64,000 nt of DNA, from sequence record NC_019411.1; one strand, given 5' to 3'. Shown one piece after another: positions 3,587-55,054 of this stretch. The notes under the pieces are model-generated. The model worked only from the letters and a program-made list of their open reading frames with translations, was not told where the DNA came from and made no database searches. Within the stretch, counting starts at the first letter, position 1; every line of letters starts with the position of its first letter. Both the position numbers and the translations under genes were made by a program.

Positions 3587-4565
3587 GAGCGGCTTCCTCC
3601 TTCTGCTTCTTGGACCGCAGGTCGCGGCGGTGTTTAAAGGCCGCGCGCAGGGCCTGGGTGGTGTCGTCGTGCATGCCCAGGTCCGCCCCATCGGGCGCGA
3701 CCACGCTGTTCTGGAGACCGAACCGATAGCCCTCGGCCGTCAGTTCATAGACCGCCTGCTCCTCGTGCATCTGGGCGAGGTGGCGATAATATTCGGCCAG
3801 CGCCAGTTCGTAGTCGCCCAGGAAGAGGCGCGCGTTGCGCTCGACGCCGGCGACCTCGGCGCGGAAGGTCAGCAGGAACCGCCCAGGCCCGACATGCGTC
3901 AGATTGTAGCCGTGTTCGGCCAGCACCTCGTCGACGGTCTTGGTGACCGTGTAGATGTGGAAGGTGTAGACGGCTTCGATGTGGGTGTCGTCGTAGAGAT
4001 ACTCGGACCGGTTTTGATGCTCGCCGATGTAGGGACCCCACTTGTGGTAGCGCCAGCCGCCGGACGCGGGCTGGTGCTCACGCCGGACTTCCACCATCGA
4101 GATGAAGTAGGGCGTGTCCGGATCGTCGATCAGGTCGGGGATGCAGGCGAGAAGCTGCTCGGGGCTGTCGCAGACGCCGTAGCTTTCGACCAGATAGGGG
4201 ATGCGCCTATAGCCCTCGGGGACCGGCGGGACCTCGTCCAGGTACTCGGTGTCGAGCACCTCGATCTTGTACTTGTCGTGGAGCAGCTTGATCCGCGCCT
4301 CGCGGCGGTCTCCGTCGGCCTTGATCCAGGCCCGGACCGCAGCGCTGCGTTCCTCCTCGGTCTGCCCGCGTTCGTAGGGCGGACCCCACTTGCTGTCGAG
4401 GTCCTCGATCTTTTCGACGATCTCGTACTCGGGATTCCAGGAGCCCATCGAGTAGACGCCCTGGTGGAGGCGAATGGGCTTGCGGGCGCGGTTGTTCATT
4501 TCCGCGATCATCTTGGCGATCGGGTCGACTTCCGAGGTGGGGCGCAGGGTGATGTCGTAGAGCAT
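3579..4565 (-). CDS. hypothetical protein
   Basis: 328 aa; TGATG coupling; YGVCDSPEQ and GGWRYHKWGPYIG blocks. Confidence 0.75.
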   Translation of the reverse strand: MLYDITLRPTSEVDPIAKMIAEMNNRARKPIRLHQGVYSMGSWNPEYEIVEKIEDLDSKWGPPYERGQTEEERSAAVRAWIKADGDRREARIKLLHDKYKIEVLDTEYLDEVPPVPEGYRRIPYLVESYGVCDSPEQLLACIPDLIDDPDTPYFISMVEVRREHQPASGGWRYHKWGPYIGEHQNRSEYLYDDTHIEAVYTFHIYTVTKTVDEVLAEHGYNLTHVGPGRFLLTFRAEVAGVERNARLFLGDYELALAEYYRHLAQMHEEQAVYELTAEGYRFGLQNSVVAPDGADLGMHDDTTQALRAAFKHRRDLRSKKQKEEAAHG

Positions 4566-46507: not shown

Positions 46508-46518
46508 GAGGCCCCAAG

Positions 46519-46860
46519 ATGCAGACCAACGCCAAGACCCGCGCGCTCCTGATGGACCTCTTCGCGACCACCGAGCACGCCTGGAAGGCCATTCCCTCCT
46601 CGCACTCGGCCAAGCGCGCCTTCCACCTGCGGCTGCTCGACGACCACACCGCCTTCCTGTTCAAGAACCCCGACGGCCTGTGGTCGCTCCAGCGCCAGGG
46701 CCACGCCCCGCGCGCCCTGTTCCACGCCTTCGACATCGGGATGGCGATGCTCGAACACGCCGGCCGCGCCCAGGTGATCGACCACCTCGCCACCTGGGGC
46801 GGAAGCCTCACCTTCATCCCGCACGGCTATGTCGCGAACCGCGACCGTCATGACGCTTGA
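46519..46860 (+). CDS. hypothetical protein
   Basis: GAGG RBS. Confidence 0.65.
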   Translation: MQTNAKTRALLMDLFATTEHAWKAIPSSHSAKRAFHLRLLDDHTAFLFKNPDGLWSLQRQGHAPRALFHAFDIGMAMLEHAGRAQVIDHLATWGGSLTFIPHGYVANRDRHDA

Positions 46861-46885
46861 CACGCCCGCAGGGCCGCGCTAACCA
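46857..46885 (+). promoter_or_regulatory. sigma70-type promoter with ~150-nt leader
   Basis: TTGACA-N17-TAACCA. Confidence 0.6.
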
Positions 46886-47037
46886 TTTTCCTTAACGCAA
46901 CCCATACGAAAATCCTGGTCCAGGGCGCCGCTGAACAGGCTCCCCGGCCGCGCGAAGCCCCGGACCCCAAAAGGGTGTCGCCCGAGGGCGCCGTAGGCGG
47001 ACGCCAAATTTTTTCGTAAGAATGAGGAAATACATCC

Positions 47038-48159
47038 ATGCCCCGTGGTCCGCTGGTCGAGAAGTACGTCAAGGGCAAGCTCTACAGCCAGCGCCAGTTC
47101 CGCCGGCTCATCATCGACACCCTGCGGGCCATCCTCGATCTGCCCGGCTACGAGAAGGGGGCGCGCGCCCGCGACATCGCCGACAAGTTCGGCGACCCCG
47201 CCTGGGTCGAGGCCGAGAACCTGCGGCTGATCGCCGTCACCCTGAACAACCTCAAGACCCAGGGGCTGGTCAAGCAGATCGAGCGCGGGCTCTACAAGGT
47301 CAACGAGGCCAAGGTCGATCTGGGCCTGGACCAGATGGAGCAGACCGAGCAGACCATCGCCGAGGTCCTGCGGGCCGAAGGGGGCTACGCCAAGCGCCGG
47401 GTGATCGACCGCGAGCACGACGCCGACAGCCAGTCGACCGACGCCAAGGCCGGCGACATCCAGCGCACCCTCACCCGCGTGCTGATGAACAGCCAACGAA
47501 TCCAGAAGGCCTACGGGGGGATGGTCTACGCCTTCTACAACCTCCCCCAGGCCGAATTGTCCCTCCTGCCCCAGATGGGGAAGTGGCTCCACCTCCAGTC
47601 GGCCGCCGCCACCCGCATGCTGACCGGCCAACCCTCCCACGAGGTCTACGGCCTGATCGAGAAGGCCACCCGCCTCCAGTACCGCCACATCGGGGCGGTC
47701 TTCAAGTTCGTGATCGACCACATCGACGAGGACTTCGCCGACGCCGCGCGCGGCTTTGAGCCCCTGCATGAGGCGATGGCCGAATTCAACGACGCCTTCT
47801 CGGACGTCAACGCCGGCGCCCGGAACAAGATCGAGGACCGGTTCGGCCCCGAGGGCGAAGACCACCGCCAGATGCGCGAGGCCGGCAAGACCTACACCGA
47901 GATCGACGACGCGCGCGAAGCGGCCTTGCGCGCCTACGACGCCGAAGCCCCGCTGCGGCTGATCGACCTCTTCTGCGAAGGAAACCCCCAGGCCCACGAG
48001 CGCGCGCCGCTCTCTTTCTACGAGGCGTTCGCCGACTGGGCGATGCTCGACGCGGCCCAACTCAGCCGGGGCATCCTCGTCGCCGACTTCACCCGCGCCA
48101 AGCGGATCAAGAAGCTCGACGACCGGGAAGACGGCCCGCTGCCCGGCTATGAGGGCTGA
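47038..48159 (+). CDS. 373-aa protein with tandem winged-helix-like N-terminal domains
   Basis: IAVTLNNLKTQGLVKQIERGLYKV; second LTRVLMNSQRIQKAYGGMVY. Confidence 0.75.
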   Translation: MPRGPLVEKYVKGKLYSQRQFRRLIIDTLRAILDLPGYEKGARARDIADKFGDPAWVEAENLRLIAVTLNNLKTQGLVKQIERGLYKVNEAKVDLGLDQMEQTEQTIAEVLRAEGGYAKRRVIDREHDADSQSTDAKAGDIQRTLTRVLMNSQRIQKAYGGMVYAFYNLPQAELSLLPQMGKWLHLQSAAATRMLTGQPSHEVYGLIEKATRLQYRHIGAVFKFVIDHIDEDFADAARGFEPLHEAMAEFNDAFSDVNAGARNKIEDRFGPEGEDHRQMREAGKTYTEIDDAREAALRAYDAEAPLRLIDLFCEGNPQAHERAPLSFYEAFADWAMLDAAQLSRGILVADFTRAKRIKKLDDREDGPLPGYEG

Positions 48160-48189
48160 TCGGCTGGAGGCCCAAAAGGGCTGGCCGCT

Positions 48190-48465
48190 CTGGGTTTGTC
48201 AACCAAAGCCCTACTCCTCTATGGTCCATAAAGGTACACATATTAAATACATTCTTAGTTTACTCTGTATATGTAAACCTCTCCCTATACTCTCTATACC
48301 CTCTAAAAGCTAACCTAATTAAATACATAGTTAGTAATATGTGTGTCTTTCTACCATTTTACTACCCATTTATTTATTATAGTTAGTTTTTCTCCTATAG
48401 TGTAGGGTAGAGAAGAGAAGAAAGGATGAAAAGTGGACTATCTACTAAATGAATAGATAATAATC
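48190..48465. other. AT-rich non-coding island (candidate origin / unwinding element)
   Basis: 53 G+C in 180 nt (48241-48420); ATTAAATACAT x2; TAGTTAGT x2. Confidence 0.6.
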
Positions 48466-48754
48466 CCTGCCGGGCAGACCTCGAAATTGGCGTCGAGCAA
48501 ATCCCGAGCAAATCCTGGTCGCCTCGCTGCCTCGTCGAGGGGATCGACACGGTATGCAGAACCCGGAGGGAGAGCGGAGCGTGTCCAGGCCGTGTCGGCG
48601 AACCTGTTGATCGTCGACCGCCTGTCCCGCCCCGACCCGTCGACCGTCCTGCCCGTCAACCGCCCTGCCGAGAAACGACCCGTCATCTGACACGGCATCC
48701 AGGTCCCGGAGGGCAAGAGCCCGATAGGGCGGGTTCGGGCCGTGTCGGCGGGAG

Positions 48755-48790
48755 TTGACAGTCGTTGATCACGACGCTAGACGTCGTGAA
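48755..48790 (+). promoter_or_regulatory. promoter of resolvase/terminase cluster with palindrome around -10
   Basis: TTGACA-N17-TAGACG; TCACGACG-CTAGA-CGTCGTGA. Confidence 0.6.
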
Positions 48791-48865
48791 TCTTGACATA
48801 CGCCCGTCTGCATGAGAGACGTGGTTAACGAGATGGGCTGCTCCAAGGCCCCTCGGGAGCCACCC

Positions 48866-52075: not shown

Positions 52076-54808
52076 GTGAGCTACTATCCGATCGAGGACC
52101 GCGCCAAGGCCCGGTCCGTCGTCAAGAACCTGCTGGACCTTCAGCGCGAGGCGGTCAAGGCCTCGCGCGGCGGCCTGATCCTGCCGCCCGACCAGAAGGC
52201 GATCATCACCCAGGTCACCGAGACCGAGGACCCGGCCCGCTGGGTCGACCTTCTGGGCCAGTTCGCCGATCGCGTCCAGACCGATCACCTCGCCCGGCTG
52301 AAGCCCCTGGCCAAGCACGACTTCAACGCCTTCTGCGAATACGTCAATCCCGAGGAGGCCCCGGCCTCCAAGTGGCACGTCTACCTGACCTCGCTCCTCC
52401 AGGAGATCGAGAACAACCACGAGCTTGAGCGCTTCGTGCTCAACTGCCCGCCCGGTCACGCCAAGCCGCTCGACGTCGACACCGAGGTCCTGATGGCCGA
52501 CGGGTCCTGGAAGCGCCTGGGCGACATCACCGTGGGCGAATACGTGGTCGGCGAGAGCGGCGCGCGCTGCAAGGTCACCGCCGTCCACGAGCAGGGGGAG
52601 CTTGCCACCCTGAAGATCACCACCGCCCACGGCCGCCAGATCATCGCCGCCCCCGATCACGCCTTCCGGGTCGGCAACACCTGGAAGGAGGCGGGCAAGC
52701 TGCGGCCGGGGGATGCGCTGTCCGTGGTCGGCGCCGCCAACCTCAACTACGACGCCAGCGGCAAGACCATCGACCACTTCGAGCTTGCCGCCTACCTCCA
52801 GGCCAAGGGCGGACGCTCCTACTTCCACCGCGTCCACAAGAGCGGGCCGAAGACCTACCGCAACGTCTTCCTGTGGACCTCCGACCACCGCGAGGCCAGC
52901 AAGATCAGCGCCTGCCTCAAGCGCCTGGGGATCGCCTTCAAGGGGCGCCTCGCCAAGCACGAGCAGGTCTGGAAGATGCGTCTGGCCACCGAATGGGGCG
53001 ACGCCCTGGCCGAGGAGTACGGCCTGGACGCGCGGATCGACGCGCGCCGGGTTCCGGCCTTTGTCACGAAAGGCGACGAGGAGCAGATCGCCCGCTACCT
53101 GTCGACCTACGCCTCCCTGGCCGGCGAGGCGCCCGACCGCTACACCATCCCGCGCATCATCCTCTACTTCAAGAACCCGGCCTTCGCCCGCGACATCCAG
53201 CGCCTGTTCGCCGTGGTCGGCGTCAACGCCCGCATCGAGGGGCGCAAGACCGGCCGCACCCGGCTGATCCTGTCGGGGCCGGACCTGGAGGCCTACTTCG
53301 CCGCCGGCCTGACCTACACCGGCCCCAACGCCGACAAGCTCGACGACAAGCGCGCGGCCTTCCCGACCTCGCCCTCGCTCCTGGCCGACACCGTCACCTG
53401 GATCGAGCCGCACGGCGTGCGCCCCTGCCGCTGCCTGACCGTCGAGGACGAGCACACCTTCATCGCCGAAGGCGTGGTGGTCCACAACTCGACCTACGCC
53501 TCGCGCCTGTTCGTGGCGTGGCGCCTGGGGCGCGATCCGCGCCAGAAGATCATCGGCGGCGGTCACTCCCAGCGCTTCGTCGAGAACGAGTTCTCCGGCA
53601 AGATTCGCAACCTCGTGCGCACCCCGCAATATCGCGACGTCTTCCCCGACGTGGTCATCGACCACGCCACCTCGGCCAAGGACATGTGGGCGATCGCCGG
53701 GCACGGTGGGCAGTACGCCGCCAAGGGCGCCGGGCAGGCCATCCACGGTCTGCGCGCCCACTTCGTCTGCGTCGACGACCCCTACCGGTCGATCGAAGTG
53801 GCCGAGTCCGCGATCGAGCGCGAGAAGATCAAGACGTGGTTCTTCGGCGACGTTGGCTCGCGTTTGTTGCCGCTCGCCAAAGTATTCCTCATCATGACGC
53901 GCTTCCATGAGGAAGATTTGACCGGGGAGATCATCAAACTCAACCAAGAAGTTCTCACCGGCGCCGACCGTTATCACATCGTTGAAGCGCCCGCCCTGTG
54001 CTACGACCCCGAGAACGACGTCCTGGGCCGGGCTCTGGGCGAAGTTTTGTGGGACTACTATGACTTGCATTATTTCAAGCGCAAGCGGTCCGAGTGGAAG
54101 TACCAAAGATTTGCTTTGGTTTATCAACAACTTGCCGACGCGGCCTCGGACACCTCCATCGCGTCCAAGTTTCAGACCTACGATCACCTGCCCCACCTGG
54201 AGCCGAAGGTGCTCAAGGCCCGGCTTGACGCGGGTCACGCCGACGAGCGCGGGCGGCCGATTCCGGACCGCAAGGAGCACTTCCGGCGGGTGGTGGTCAG
54301 CGTCGACTCGGCCAACAAGCCCGGCGCCCGCAACGACTACAGCGTCGCCCAGGTCTGGGGGGAGACCCACGCCCGCAAGCACTACCTGATCTACCAGGAG
54401 CGCAAGAAGGTCGACATCACCGGCCTGACCGAGATGATCGAGCGGGTGGCCAAGCGCTACGAGGTCGACGCCATCCTGGTCGAAGACAAGGGCAACGGCA
54501 CCGCCTACATCCAGGCTCGGGGCCAGACCGACAGCCAGCGGCGGCTCGCCCCGGCCCCGATCGAGGCGATCCAGGTCCCGAGCACCTATTCCAAGGAGTT
54601 CCGCTTCAACGAGATCGTCCCGATGATCGAGGCCGGCGAGGTCTTCCTGCCGGGCAAGGCCCCGTGGCTCGACCTGCTGATCCGCGAAATCGGTCAGTTC
54701 CCCGAAGGCGCCCATGACGACCAAGTCGACGCCATGACGCAGTACCTCCGCTGGGCCAAGTCCAAGCGCACGCGGTTCGGCGCGCGCAAGGTCGGCTCGA
54801 TGGGCTGA
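52076..54808 (+). CDS. terL: terminase large subunit, intein-interrupted
   Basis: Walker A PPGHAK/ST split by intein; Walker B FVCVDDP; nuclease SVDSA...HDDQVDA. Confidence 0.92.
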   Translation: MSYYPIEDRAKARSVVKNLLDLQREAVKASRGGLILPPDQKAIITQVTETEDPARWVDLLGQFADRVQTDHLARLKPLAKHDFNAFCEYVNPEEAPASKWHVYLTSLLQEIENNHELERFVLNCPPGHAKPLDVDTEVLMADGSWKRLGDITVGEYVVGESGARCKVTAVHEQGELATLKITTAHGRQIIAAPDHAFRVGNTWKEAGKLRPGDALSVVGAANLNYDASGKTIDHFELAAYLQAKGGRSYFHRVHKSGPKTYRNVFLWTSDHREASKISACLKRLGIAFKGRLAKHEQVWKMRLATEWGDALAEEYGLDARIDARRVPAFVTKGDEEQIARYLSTYASLAGEAPDRYTIPRIILYFKNPAFARDIQRLFAVVGVNARIEGRKTGRTRLILSGPDLEAYFAAGLTYTGPNADKLDDKRAAFPTSPSLLADTVTWIEPHGVRPCRCLTVEDEHTFIAEGVVVHNSTYASRLFVAWRLGRDPRQKIIGGGHSQRFVENEFSGKIRNLVRTPQYRDVFPDVVIDHATSAKDMWAIAGHGGQYAAKGAGQAIHGLRAHFVCVDDPYRSIEVAESAIEREKIKTWFFGDVGSRLLPLAKVFLIMTRFHEEDLTGEIIKLNQEVLTGADRYHIVEAPALCYDPENDVLGRALGEVLWDYYDLHYFKRKRSEWKYQRFALVYQQLADAASDTSIASKFQTYDHLPHLEPKVLKARLDAGHADERGRPIPDRKEHFRRVVVSVDSANKPGARNDYSVAQVWGETHARKHYLIYQERKKVDITGLTEMIERVAKRYEVDAILVEDKGNGTAYIQARGQTDSQRRLAPAPIEAIQVPSTYSKEFRFNEIVPMIEAGEVFLPGKAPWLDLLIREIGQFPEGAHDDQVDAMTQYLRWAKSKRTRFGARKVGSMG
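52466..53488 (+). mobile_element. 341-aa intein with degenerate LAGLIDADG domain
   Basis: PLDVDTEVLMADG start; block B AAPDH; block F CRCLTVED; end VVHN followed by Ser. Confidence 0.88.
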
Positions 54809-54880: not shown

Positions 54881-55034
54881 AGGGACCCTTCGAAATTAAC
54901 CTTTCGGGGACCCTGGGAAATCGACAGACGGGGACCCTGGCCATTTTCCGGCTGGGGACCCTGCCAAATTCATCGCCGGGGACCCTCCGAAATTCATCTC
55001 TGGGGACCCTGGCGAATTCAGAGCCGGGGACCCT
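54881..55034. repeat. 24-bp-period GGGGACCCT array
   Basis: cores at 54906, 54930, 54954, 54978, 55002, 55026 plus AGGGACCCT at 54881. Confidence 0.9.
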
Positions 55035-55054
55035 GGCGAATCATGGAGCCGACG

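Follow-up and report, generated by a model that had tools for sequence, protein, structure and literature searches.

A CG-free AT-rich island next to a winged-helix gene is a candidate replication origin of phiCbK-type Caulobacter phages

Introduction

What does an isolated AT-rich stretch do between the genes gp103 and gp102 of the GC-rich Caulobacter phage CcrSwift, and could replication start there? Studies of the Caulobacter cell cycle use phiCbK as their standard phage, and to our knowledge no replication origin has been mapped for phages of its type. Replicating episomes of these 200-kb phages were described by Mohammadi and Ely in 2025, with an origin postulated as the explanation (PMC12195562). 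An origin is not mentioned by Gill et al. (2012; PMC3556154), nor is the island, which is apparently undescribed in the literature.

The window, meaning the whole stretch of DNA analysed here, is the last 64 kb of the CcrSwift genome (NC_019411, 219,216 bp) and is 100% identical to the record. Coordinates are window positions (NC_019411 record position minus 155,216) unless the record is named. For genome-wide scans, the whole CcrSwift genome was put together from loci L012-L019 and the window. A first-pass annotation of the window had proposed the island as an origin-type site carrying an unwinding element and iterons, with a nucleoid-protein loading site or an sRNA locus as alternatives.

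Composition and gene context of the island

The island lies inside a 706-bp gap between two genes:

47038-48159, plus strand: gp103 (D870_gp103), 373 aa, phrog_10876 (function unknown), the proposed reader of the island
48187-48470, no strand: CG-free AT-rich island, without a second of its kind in the 219-kb genome
48866-49570, plus strand: gp102 (D870_gp102), by annotation the first gene of a block running to a RuvC-like resolvase, TerS and TerL

No gene is annotated in the gap in CcrSwift, Magneto, Karma, Ccr10 and other records, in agreement with the initial statement that no credible ORF is present. The products of the downstream block (gp102, RuvC-like resolvase, TerS and TerL) were matched to phrog_11118, phrog_1770, phrog_11494 and phrog_38, and the gap indeed marks a boundary between accessory genes and a resolvase-terminase block, as had been described.

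In genome coordinates, the island falls at about 203.40-203.70 kb of CcrSwift and 199.65-199.95 kb of phiCbK (JX100813). The count of 53 G+C in 180 bases with zero CG, given earlier for 48241-48420, was reproduced. The CG-free run is longer than first noted, covering 284-285 bp (48187-48470) at about 30% GC versus 66% for the genome, and the runner-up in the whole 219,216-bp genome measures 85 bp. Similarly, the sole stretch of the genome below 0.38 GC is the island region (348 bp, minimum 0.25), and no second copy of the island was found elsewhere in the CcrSwift genome. Judged by composition only, 25-35% GC over about 280 bp beside repeats is what a region of the unwinding type would look like, and by this measure no other part of the CcrSwift genome is easily melted. 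The switch from pyrimidine-rich to purine-rich DNA reported near 48400 was also recovered, the purine fraction being 0.27-0.37 over most of 48250-48399 and 0.87 at 48400-48429.

Repeat architecture of the island

The following elements were delimited in and around the island:

48158-48190 and about 48193-48212, plus strand: two hairpins 3' of the gp103 stop, forming the terminator-like left boundary of the island
48208-48259, plus strand: unit 1, with C-box 48208-48224 (GCCCTACTCCTCTATGG) and AT-box 48230-48259
48278-48350, plus strand: unit 2, with C-box 48278-48304 (holding a tandem CTCTCTATA) and AT-box 48306-48335
48355-48425, minus strand: unit 3, inverted, with an inverted AT-box at about 48355-48392 and a purine G-box at 48400-48425
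48426-48481, no strand: right AT-rich spacer, with sigma-70-like hexamers at 48434-48461 and a small GC hairpin at 48466-48478

The short words on which the iteron proposal was built are all present, namely ATTAAATACAT at 48242 and 48318, TAGTTAGT at 48328 and 48380, and tandem CTATAC at 48285 and 48294. Swift has six direct and three inverted repeats against 0.2 and 0.3 in shuffles (14-mers with up to 2 mismatches), and repeats were far above shuffles in every phage tested. The proposal holds in that the repeats are real and above chance; it does not hold for the units themselves, which are composites of about 76 bp and not the short words listed. For example, the 11-mer pair at 48242/48318 is the core of a direct repeat (D1) that links the AT-boxes of units 1 and 2 over 30 nt, with 77% identity and a period of 76 bp.

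Three such composites were resolved in the island, the first two direct and the third inverted. Each is made of an AT-box and a C-box, the latter being replaced by the purine G-box in the last unit. Units 1 and 2 can be aligned over about 70 nt, and reverse-complementing unit 3 gives an alignment of about 65 nt with unit 2. Because unit 3 is inverted, units 2 and 3 make a long imperfect palindrome, seen as a long hairpin in the folds of both strands. In addition, the start of AT-box 1 recurs in inverted orientation at 48335-48350 in unit 2 (repeat I1).

At the left boundary, the fold of 48156-48205 reaches -19.7 kcal/mol. RBC57 has a different sequence at this site, which is again self-complementary, and a rho-independent terminator is annotated at the equivalent position in Colossus. 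The GC hairpin at 48466-48478 is weak and not significant. Sigma-70-like hexamers are also found at the left edge (48196-48225).

Conservation among the Dolichocephalovirinae

Ten lineages were compared: the Swift group, Ccr5, Rogue, BL57, BL10, the metagenomic L028, Bajun, Colossus, PW and Bambus. Conservation in relatives had been named at the outset as a check on the origin proposal, and the layout was found at the equivalent place in 10/10 lineages, including the Brevundimonas phages Bajun and Bambus. A hairpin comes directly 3' of the gp103 homologue and is followed by two to five units in direct orientation and by one inverted unit that closes with a G-box. All ten share the element TTT(T)CC-N6-9-GGGGTATAGAGAG in this box, in degenerate form in some (e.g., Colossus and PW). 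The spacing of the direct repeats is 76-79 bp in nine of the ten lineages:

76 bp: Swift, BL57, Bajun and Bambus
77 bp: Colossus and L028
78 bp: PW
79 bp: Ccr5 and BL10
95 bp: Rogue (its only direct repeat detected)

AT-boxes of one genome are alike and those of different lineages are unrelated, which is the pattern of repeated binding sites that co-evolve with their reader. Among close relatives, the 282-bp island carries 0-1 substitutions in Magneto, Karma, Ccr10 and RBC57, where the flanking 3 kb differ by 1.6-3%. No indels were found in the island in six relatives, and the adjoining 90 bp are full of them. Judging from these counts, both the sequence and the spacing of the island are under purifying selection. 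The island of phiCbK has 15 substitutions, two of which, 48310 C>G and 48386 G>C, are paired so that units 2 and 3 stay symmetrical.

The gap of Bajun (L006) is 1 kb long and contains, along with the island, two exact 27-bp copies of TAACTGTCCATATATGGACACTTAGCG placed 40 bp apart (4396-4462), each copy being itself palindromic.

The neighbouring gene gp103

A profile search with gp103 gave 114 cluster representatives, 59 of which were used for the AlphaFold2 alignment. The resulting model (pLDDT 94, pTM 0.86) superseded a poor earlier one built from 6 sequences (pLDDT 68). In this model, winged helices at about residues 15-96 and 97-175 are followed by a helical C-terminal domain, and VIA-align related the gp103 domains to the winged helices of IdeR, IclR, H1 and forkhead with Z scores of 8-8.7. 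We were thus able to model gp103 confidently as a multi-winged-helix protein of DNA-binding type. No specific functional homologue emerged: gp103 has no Pfam match, Foldseek searches of the PDB with both models returned weak multi-winged-helix matches only, and the ESM Atlas search gave nothing usable (scores of 0.83 or less). No ATPase, helicase-loader or known initiator domain was detected in gp103, whose best initiator-like match (TIGR01714) reaches 12 bits at an E value of 0.14, the cut-off being 49.8. Weak matches to AbiEi-type wHTH domains were obtained with PADLOC for gp103 (E 2e-4) and with Pfam in 7/59 relatives; ORC4_C was matched in one of the 59 and is there merely a winged-helix domain. 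An AbiEi-type antitoxin or regulator locus was considered and rejected, since such a locus pairs the wHTH protein with an AbiEii nucleotidyltransferase toxin gene, whereas only the wHTH part matches here and neither gp104 nor gp102 has defence-system or Pfam matches.

With 35-57% identity between lineages, gp103 is among the most divergent proteins of the region, its best-kept part being the last conserved segment (residues 301-347). The distant family members L024, L026 and L027 have neither a downstream gap nor an AT island, and the contexts of L024, L026, L027 and L030 showed no island and no informative neighbours. As members outside the subfamily lack an adjacent island, the pairing of gp103 with the island is a feature of the subfamily and not a rule of the family.

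In RBC57 (L031, PV231353, 74960-76078), the annotation divides the gp103 homologue into three ORFs. The split is due to three 1-nt deletions, each in a homopolymer run, with only 7 substitutions besides. These deletions are probably sequencing errors and not evidence that gp103 is dispensable; if real, they would make it dispensable in RBC57.

Joint exchange of gp103 and the island in Ccr5

The relation between the island and its neighbours can be followed in Ccr5 (L002), an otherwise Swift-like phage in which a BL10-like version takes the place of gp104, gp103 and the island. Identity between Ccr5 and Swift is distributed as follows:

up to 46508: 94%
46509-48481 (gp104-gp103-island): low, with 35% for the gp103 protein
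from 48482: 96%
TerS protein: 93%

The gp103 of Ccr5, named gp312 there, is 77% identical to that of BL10. The exchanged segment stops exactly at the right edge of the island, with Ccr5/Swift identity resuming at 48482. The island therefore travels with gp103 and not with the promoter block or the terminase, a pattern that linkage alone could explain, as a single event between adjacent DNA would suffice. A terminase recognition site of the pac or cosB type was rejected, because the island was replaced while TerS remained 93% identical to that of Swift.

The GC-rich half of the gap

The remainder of the gap is GC-rich and contains separate elements:

48494-48515, plus strand: two exact tandem copies of CGAGCAAATCC, part of the conserved downstream segment and not of the island module, unchanged in Ccr5
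48546-48600, plus strand: copy 1 of a GC-rich element of about 60 bp (GACACGG..CCCGGAGGG..GGCCGTGTCGGCG; direct repeats D2 and D3)
48601-48688, no strand: hypervariable tandem repeats with CGTCGACC-type units, whose copy number differs between Swift, Karma, Ccr10 and RBC57
48689-48836, plus strand: copy 2 of the 60-bp element (48689-48750) and the promoter-like block, leading into gp102
48755-48836, plus strand: promoter-like block, with TTGACA at 48755-48760, GCTAGAC at 48776-48782, GAATC at 48788-48792, TTGACA at 48793-48798 and GTTAAC at 48824-48829

The reported positions of CGAGCAAATCC (48494 and 48505) and CGTGTCGGCG (48591 and 48741) are correct. The GC-rich "iterons" assigned to the origin by the first-pass annotation (CGAGCAAATCC and the CGTCGACC-type repeats) belong to a different mosaic segment, part of which is hypervariable and deleted in phiCbK. 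The GC-rich middle of the gap differs by indels between close relatives, and in phiCbK 89 nt of the hypervariable stretch are swapped for 31 nt, leaving it largely deleted. Slippage drives the evolution of 48601-48688, which seems loosely constrained.

The CGTGTCGGCG pair is the core of the duplicated element of about 60 bp, whose copies lie 143-150 bp apart. Two copies are found in the Swift group and Ccr5, and one in Rogue, BL10 and BL57. As copy 2 abuts the promoter-like block, the element may be an upstream regulator site. The block itself (TTGACAGTCG..GCTAGAC..GAATCTTGACAT..GGTTAACGAGATG) is conserved across the subfamily, its AATCTTGACA being retained even in the Bajun, Colossus and Bambus phages, and it holds the only GANTC (CcrM) site of the gap as well as a GTTAAC.

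A candidate origin with gp103 as its proposed reader

On the sequence evidence, the island is a cis-acting DNA site and not a gene. Its best-supported reading is that of a nucleoprotein assembly site with gp103 as the specificity partner, and gp103 probably binds it. Several observations point to a replication origin, for lytic growth, for episomal carriage or for both, as its most likely role, which we propose tentatively and by analogy: the island is the only easily melted DNA, it has direct and inverted repeats, the gene of its putative reader adjoins the site and was exchanged along with it, and no other initiator or origin of these phages is known. In this sense the first-pass proposal of an origin-type site stands in part, being supported by the AT-rich island, the ordered repeats, the neighbouring gene of DNA-binding type and the conserved position; it is not supported by GC skew or by DnaA and CtrA boxes. 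The island is the best candidate so far for the replication origin of the phiCbK-type phages.

A mechanism can be outlined on this basis. The three units of about 76 bp, two direct and one inverted, would form a phased platform on which the tandem winged-helix protein gp103 assembles. Specificity would be conferred by the lineage-specific AT-boxes, and the C-box/G-box motif found throughout the subfamily would be read by a conserved partner or by part of gp103. The DNA of about 30% GC between and beside the units would be the place of duplex opening, and we infer that unwinding at the island would let replication start there, lytically and/or as an episome. A further step, which we consider doubtful, would be to see in gp103 and the island a new type of phage replicon, with an ATPase-free winged-helix/helical initiator and repeats phased at about 76 bp, driving both lytic replication and episomal persistence.

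If the origin reading is true, a 1.6-kb fragment with gp103, its upstream gap and the island (46861-48481) should replicate autonomously and the units should be footprinted by gp103; a ready-made specificity swap is offered by the variants that occur naturally in Ccr5 and BL10, and a compact replicon for Caulobacter and Brevundimonas vectors could be derived. If replication starts elsewhere, no other non-coding DNA of the genome is as constrained as the island, which would still need an explanation.

The cumulative GC skew, suggested earlier as a check, makes no turn at the island and gives the origin no support, as the skew merely follows gene orientation. Its minimum coincides with a minor AT dip (0.44 GC) at 81024-81125 of the CcrSwift record, at the convergent junction between the lysis cassette and the minus-strand replication module, and gene orientation accounts for the minimum.

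Several types of origin were rejected. The motifs of the Caulobacter Cori include DnaA G-boxes and W-boxes and the CtrA site TTAA-N7-TTAA. None of these was found within one mismatch in the Swift gap, and the gaps of relatives gave scattered single near-matches only; a host-type, DnaA-dependent origin like Cori was rejected for the Swift gap on these grounds. Similarly, Phage_rep_org_N, Phage_rep_O and Rep3_N had no match anywhere in the 219-kb genome. An iteron-type origin with an initiator of the Rep_3, lambda O or G38P type was rejected, as these families are absent and the units are of about 30-60 nt with a period of 76-79 bp, in place of several direct repeats of about 17-22 bp spaced by some two helical turns.

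Comparison with known systems

The ORB repeats of haloarchaea carry a G-string. The repeats of the island are likewise about 30-60 nt long, direct and inverted, and end in a G-run; the site adjoins a winged-helix gene and behaves as if specifically paired with it. The initiator-adjacent origins of archaea combine an Orc1/Cdc6 gene, an AT-rich unwinding element and inverted ORB repeats (PMC4010727, PMC3936714), and the island is similarly AT-rich and flanked by repeats. In contrast to these systems, gp103 has no AAA+ domain, the units of about 76 bp recur at a fixed period, and no homology was detected. If confirmed, the island would be an AT-rich origin of this design, flanked by repeats and next to its initiator gene, with phased repeats of unusual length.

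With the iteron origins of plasmids and of lambdoid or SPP1-type phages (Rep/RepE-pi, lambda O and SPP1 G38P), the island shares direct repeats for assembly to which one inverted copy is added, AT-rich DNA next to them, and an adjoining initiator gene, here proposed to be gp103. The swapping of the specificity module as a cassette between related phages and a reader with two winged helices (putatively gp103) are also common to both. The differences are the period of 76-79 bp versus about 18-22 bp, the lack of DnaA boxes in the island, and the absence of Rep3_N, Phage_rep_O and Phage_rep_org_N, with TIGR01714 matched only at the E value given above.

The primary origin of phage T7 consists of promoters followed by an AT-rich stretch, and the island is also AT-rich and has promoter-like hexamers. 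Words resembling T7/SP6 promoters were found on the minus strand of Swift (ACACTATAGG) and in Rogue (ACTCACTATAGG); these words are not conserved across lineages. No gene for a single-subunit RNA polymerase was detected by a PF00940 match, in a search where the control genomes could not have given a positive. A T7-type promoter based on ACACTATAGG-like words was rejected for both reasons, the polymerase result being qualified by the uninformative controls. A T7-like DNA polymerase is present in the phiCbK-type phage (Gill et al. 2012, PMC3556154).

Finally, the T5 injection stop, lambda cosB and SPP1 pac resemble the island in having clusters of direct and inverted repeats near packaging genes, and the CcrSwift genome has long terminal repeats like those of T5. 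The island differs in lying 5.6 kb before the boundary of the 10-kb terminal repeat, which begins at 54030, and in that TerS does not co-vary with it.

Alternative explanations

The alternative that survives best, although we hold it to be unlikely, keeps gp103 on the island and gives it a role other than replication: insulating the accessory operon from the gp102-resolvase-terminase operon combined with promoter timing, concatemer processing, or episome partition. Winged helices and AbiEi-type domains are typically found in transcription regulators, for which operator arrays with direct and inverted repeats are common, and the island does have terminator-like hairpins on one side and a promoter-like block, strongly conserved, on the other. 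However, that block is 290-350 bp away in a different mosaic segment and stayed Swift-like in Ccr5 despite the change of island, and AT richness with CG avoidance over 284 bp exceeds the needs of an operator. The resolvase and terminase genes downstream would suit such a role; TerS does not co-vary with the island, which speaks against it. Episomal carriage requires maintenance functions, yet no gene for a partition ATPase adjoins the island.

Less probable is an action of the island without gp103, as a topological barrier or loading site, through DNA structure (a cruciform or an H-DNA-prone polypyrimidine/polypurine palindrome) or through host GapR, MucR or IHF. A long imperfect palindrome is present in every lineage, its symmetry is maintained by the one compensatory pair of changes in phiCbK, and the pyrimidine-to-purine switch would be in keeping with such structures; distant gp103 homologues that have no island are also easier to accommodate. 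AT-rich DNA is preferred by GapR (PMC8510090), but the phage encodes no GapR, the gene being absent from the CcrSwift genome. Neither a cruciform nor generic AT binding needs direct repeats fixed at 76-79 bp or the likeness of units 1 and 2. Moreover, the AT-box is strongly conserved inside a lineage, yet replaced between lineages, and such lineage-specific repeats are not explained by a generic nucleoid-protein site.

We regard a structured non-coding RNA of about 200-280 nt, regulatory or acting as a decoy, as very improbable. A long hairpin is predicted, the BL57 plus strand folds with z = -7, and sigma-70-like hexamers occur at both edges (48196-48225 and 48434-48461), but the left-edge candidate promoter is not conserved outside the Swift group. 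The strand that folds better by z-score is plus in 6/10 phages and minus in 4/10, with most z-scores weak, and the window has no Rfam, tRNA or tmRNA match. The sRNA locus offered earlier as an alternative is disfavoured by the lack of an Rfam match and of a consistent strand preference in folding. Assembled contigs from RNA libraries of phiCbK infection run through the island, which is accordingly not demonstrably untranscribed; these contigs show neither level, strand nor ends of transcription, and the libraries may contain DNA. An RNA would also leave the direct repetition of units without explanation, and this repetition together with a strand-neutral palindrome points to recognition at the level of DNA.

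It is scarcely credible that the island lacks a function and is left over from AT-rich DNA that was mobile or acquired horizontally, as its foreign composition and location at a mosaic junction might suggest, since its place and architecture are kept in ten lineages including Brevundimonas jumbo phages, close relatives differ by 0-1 changes and no indels in 282 bp beside a hypervariable stretch, and the genome has no other copy.

Features of the terminal repeat region

TerL (52076-54808) has an intein with a LAGLIDADG-type endonuclease domain, and the left boundary of the terminal repeat falls within terL; both are in the annotation and in the literature (Gill et al. 2012). At 54905-55041, immediately behind the terL stop, we found a rival origin candidate made of about 5.7 copies of a 24-bp CGGGGACCCTGGCGAATTCAGAGC-like unit. 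The 24-bp-phased GGGGACCCT array, inside the terminal repeat and amid GTTAAC words, is classical iteron-like in appearance. As a competing candidate, the array may be an origin or an early-operator site.
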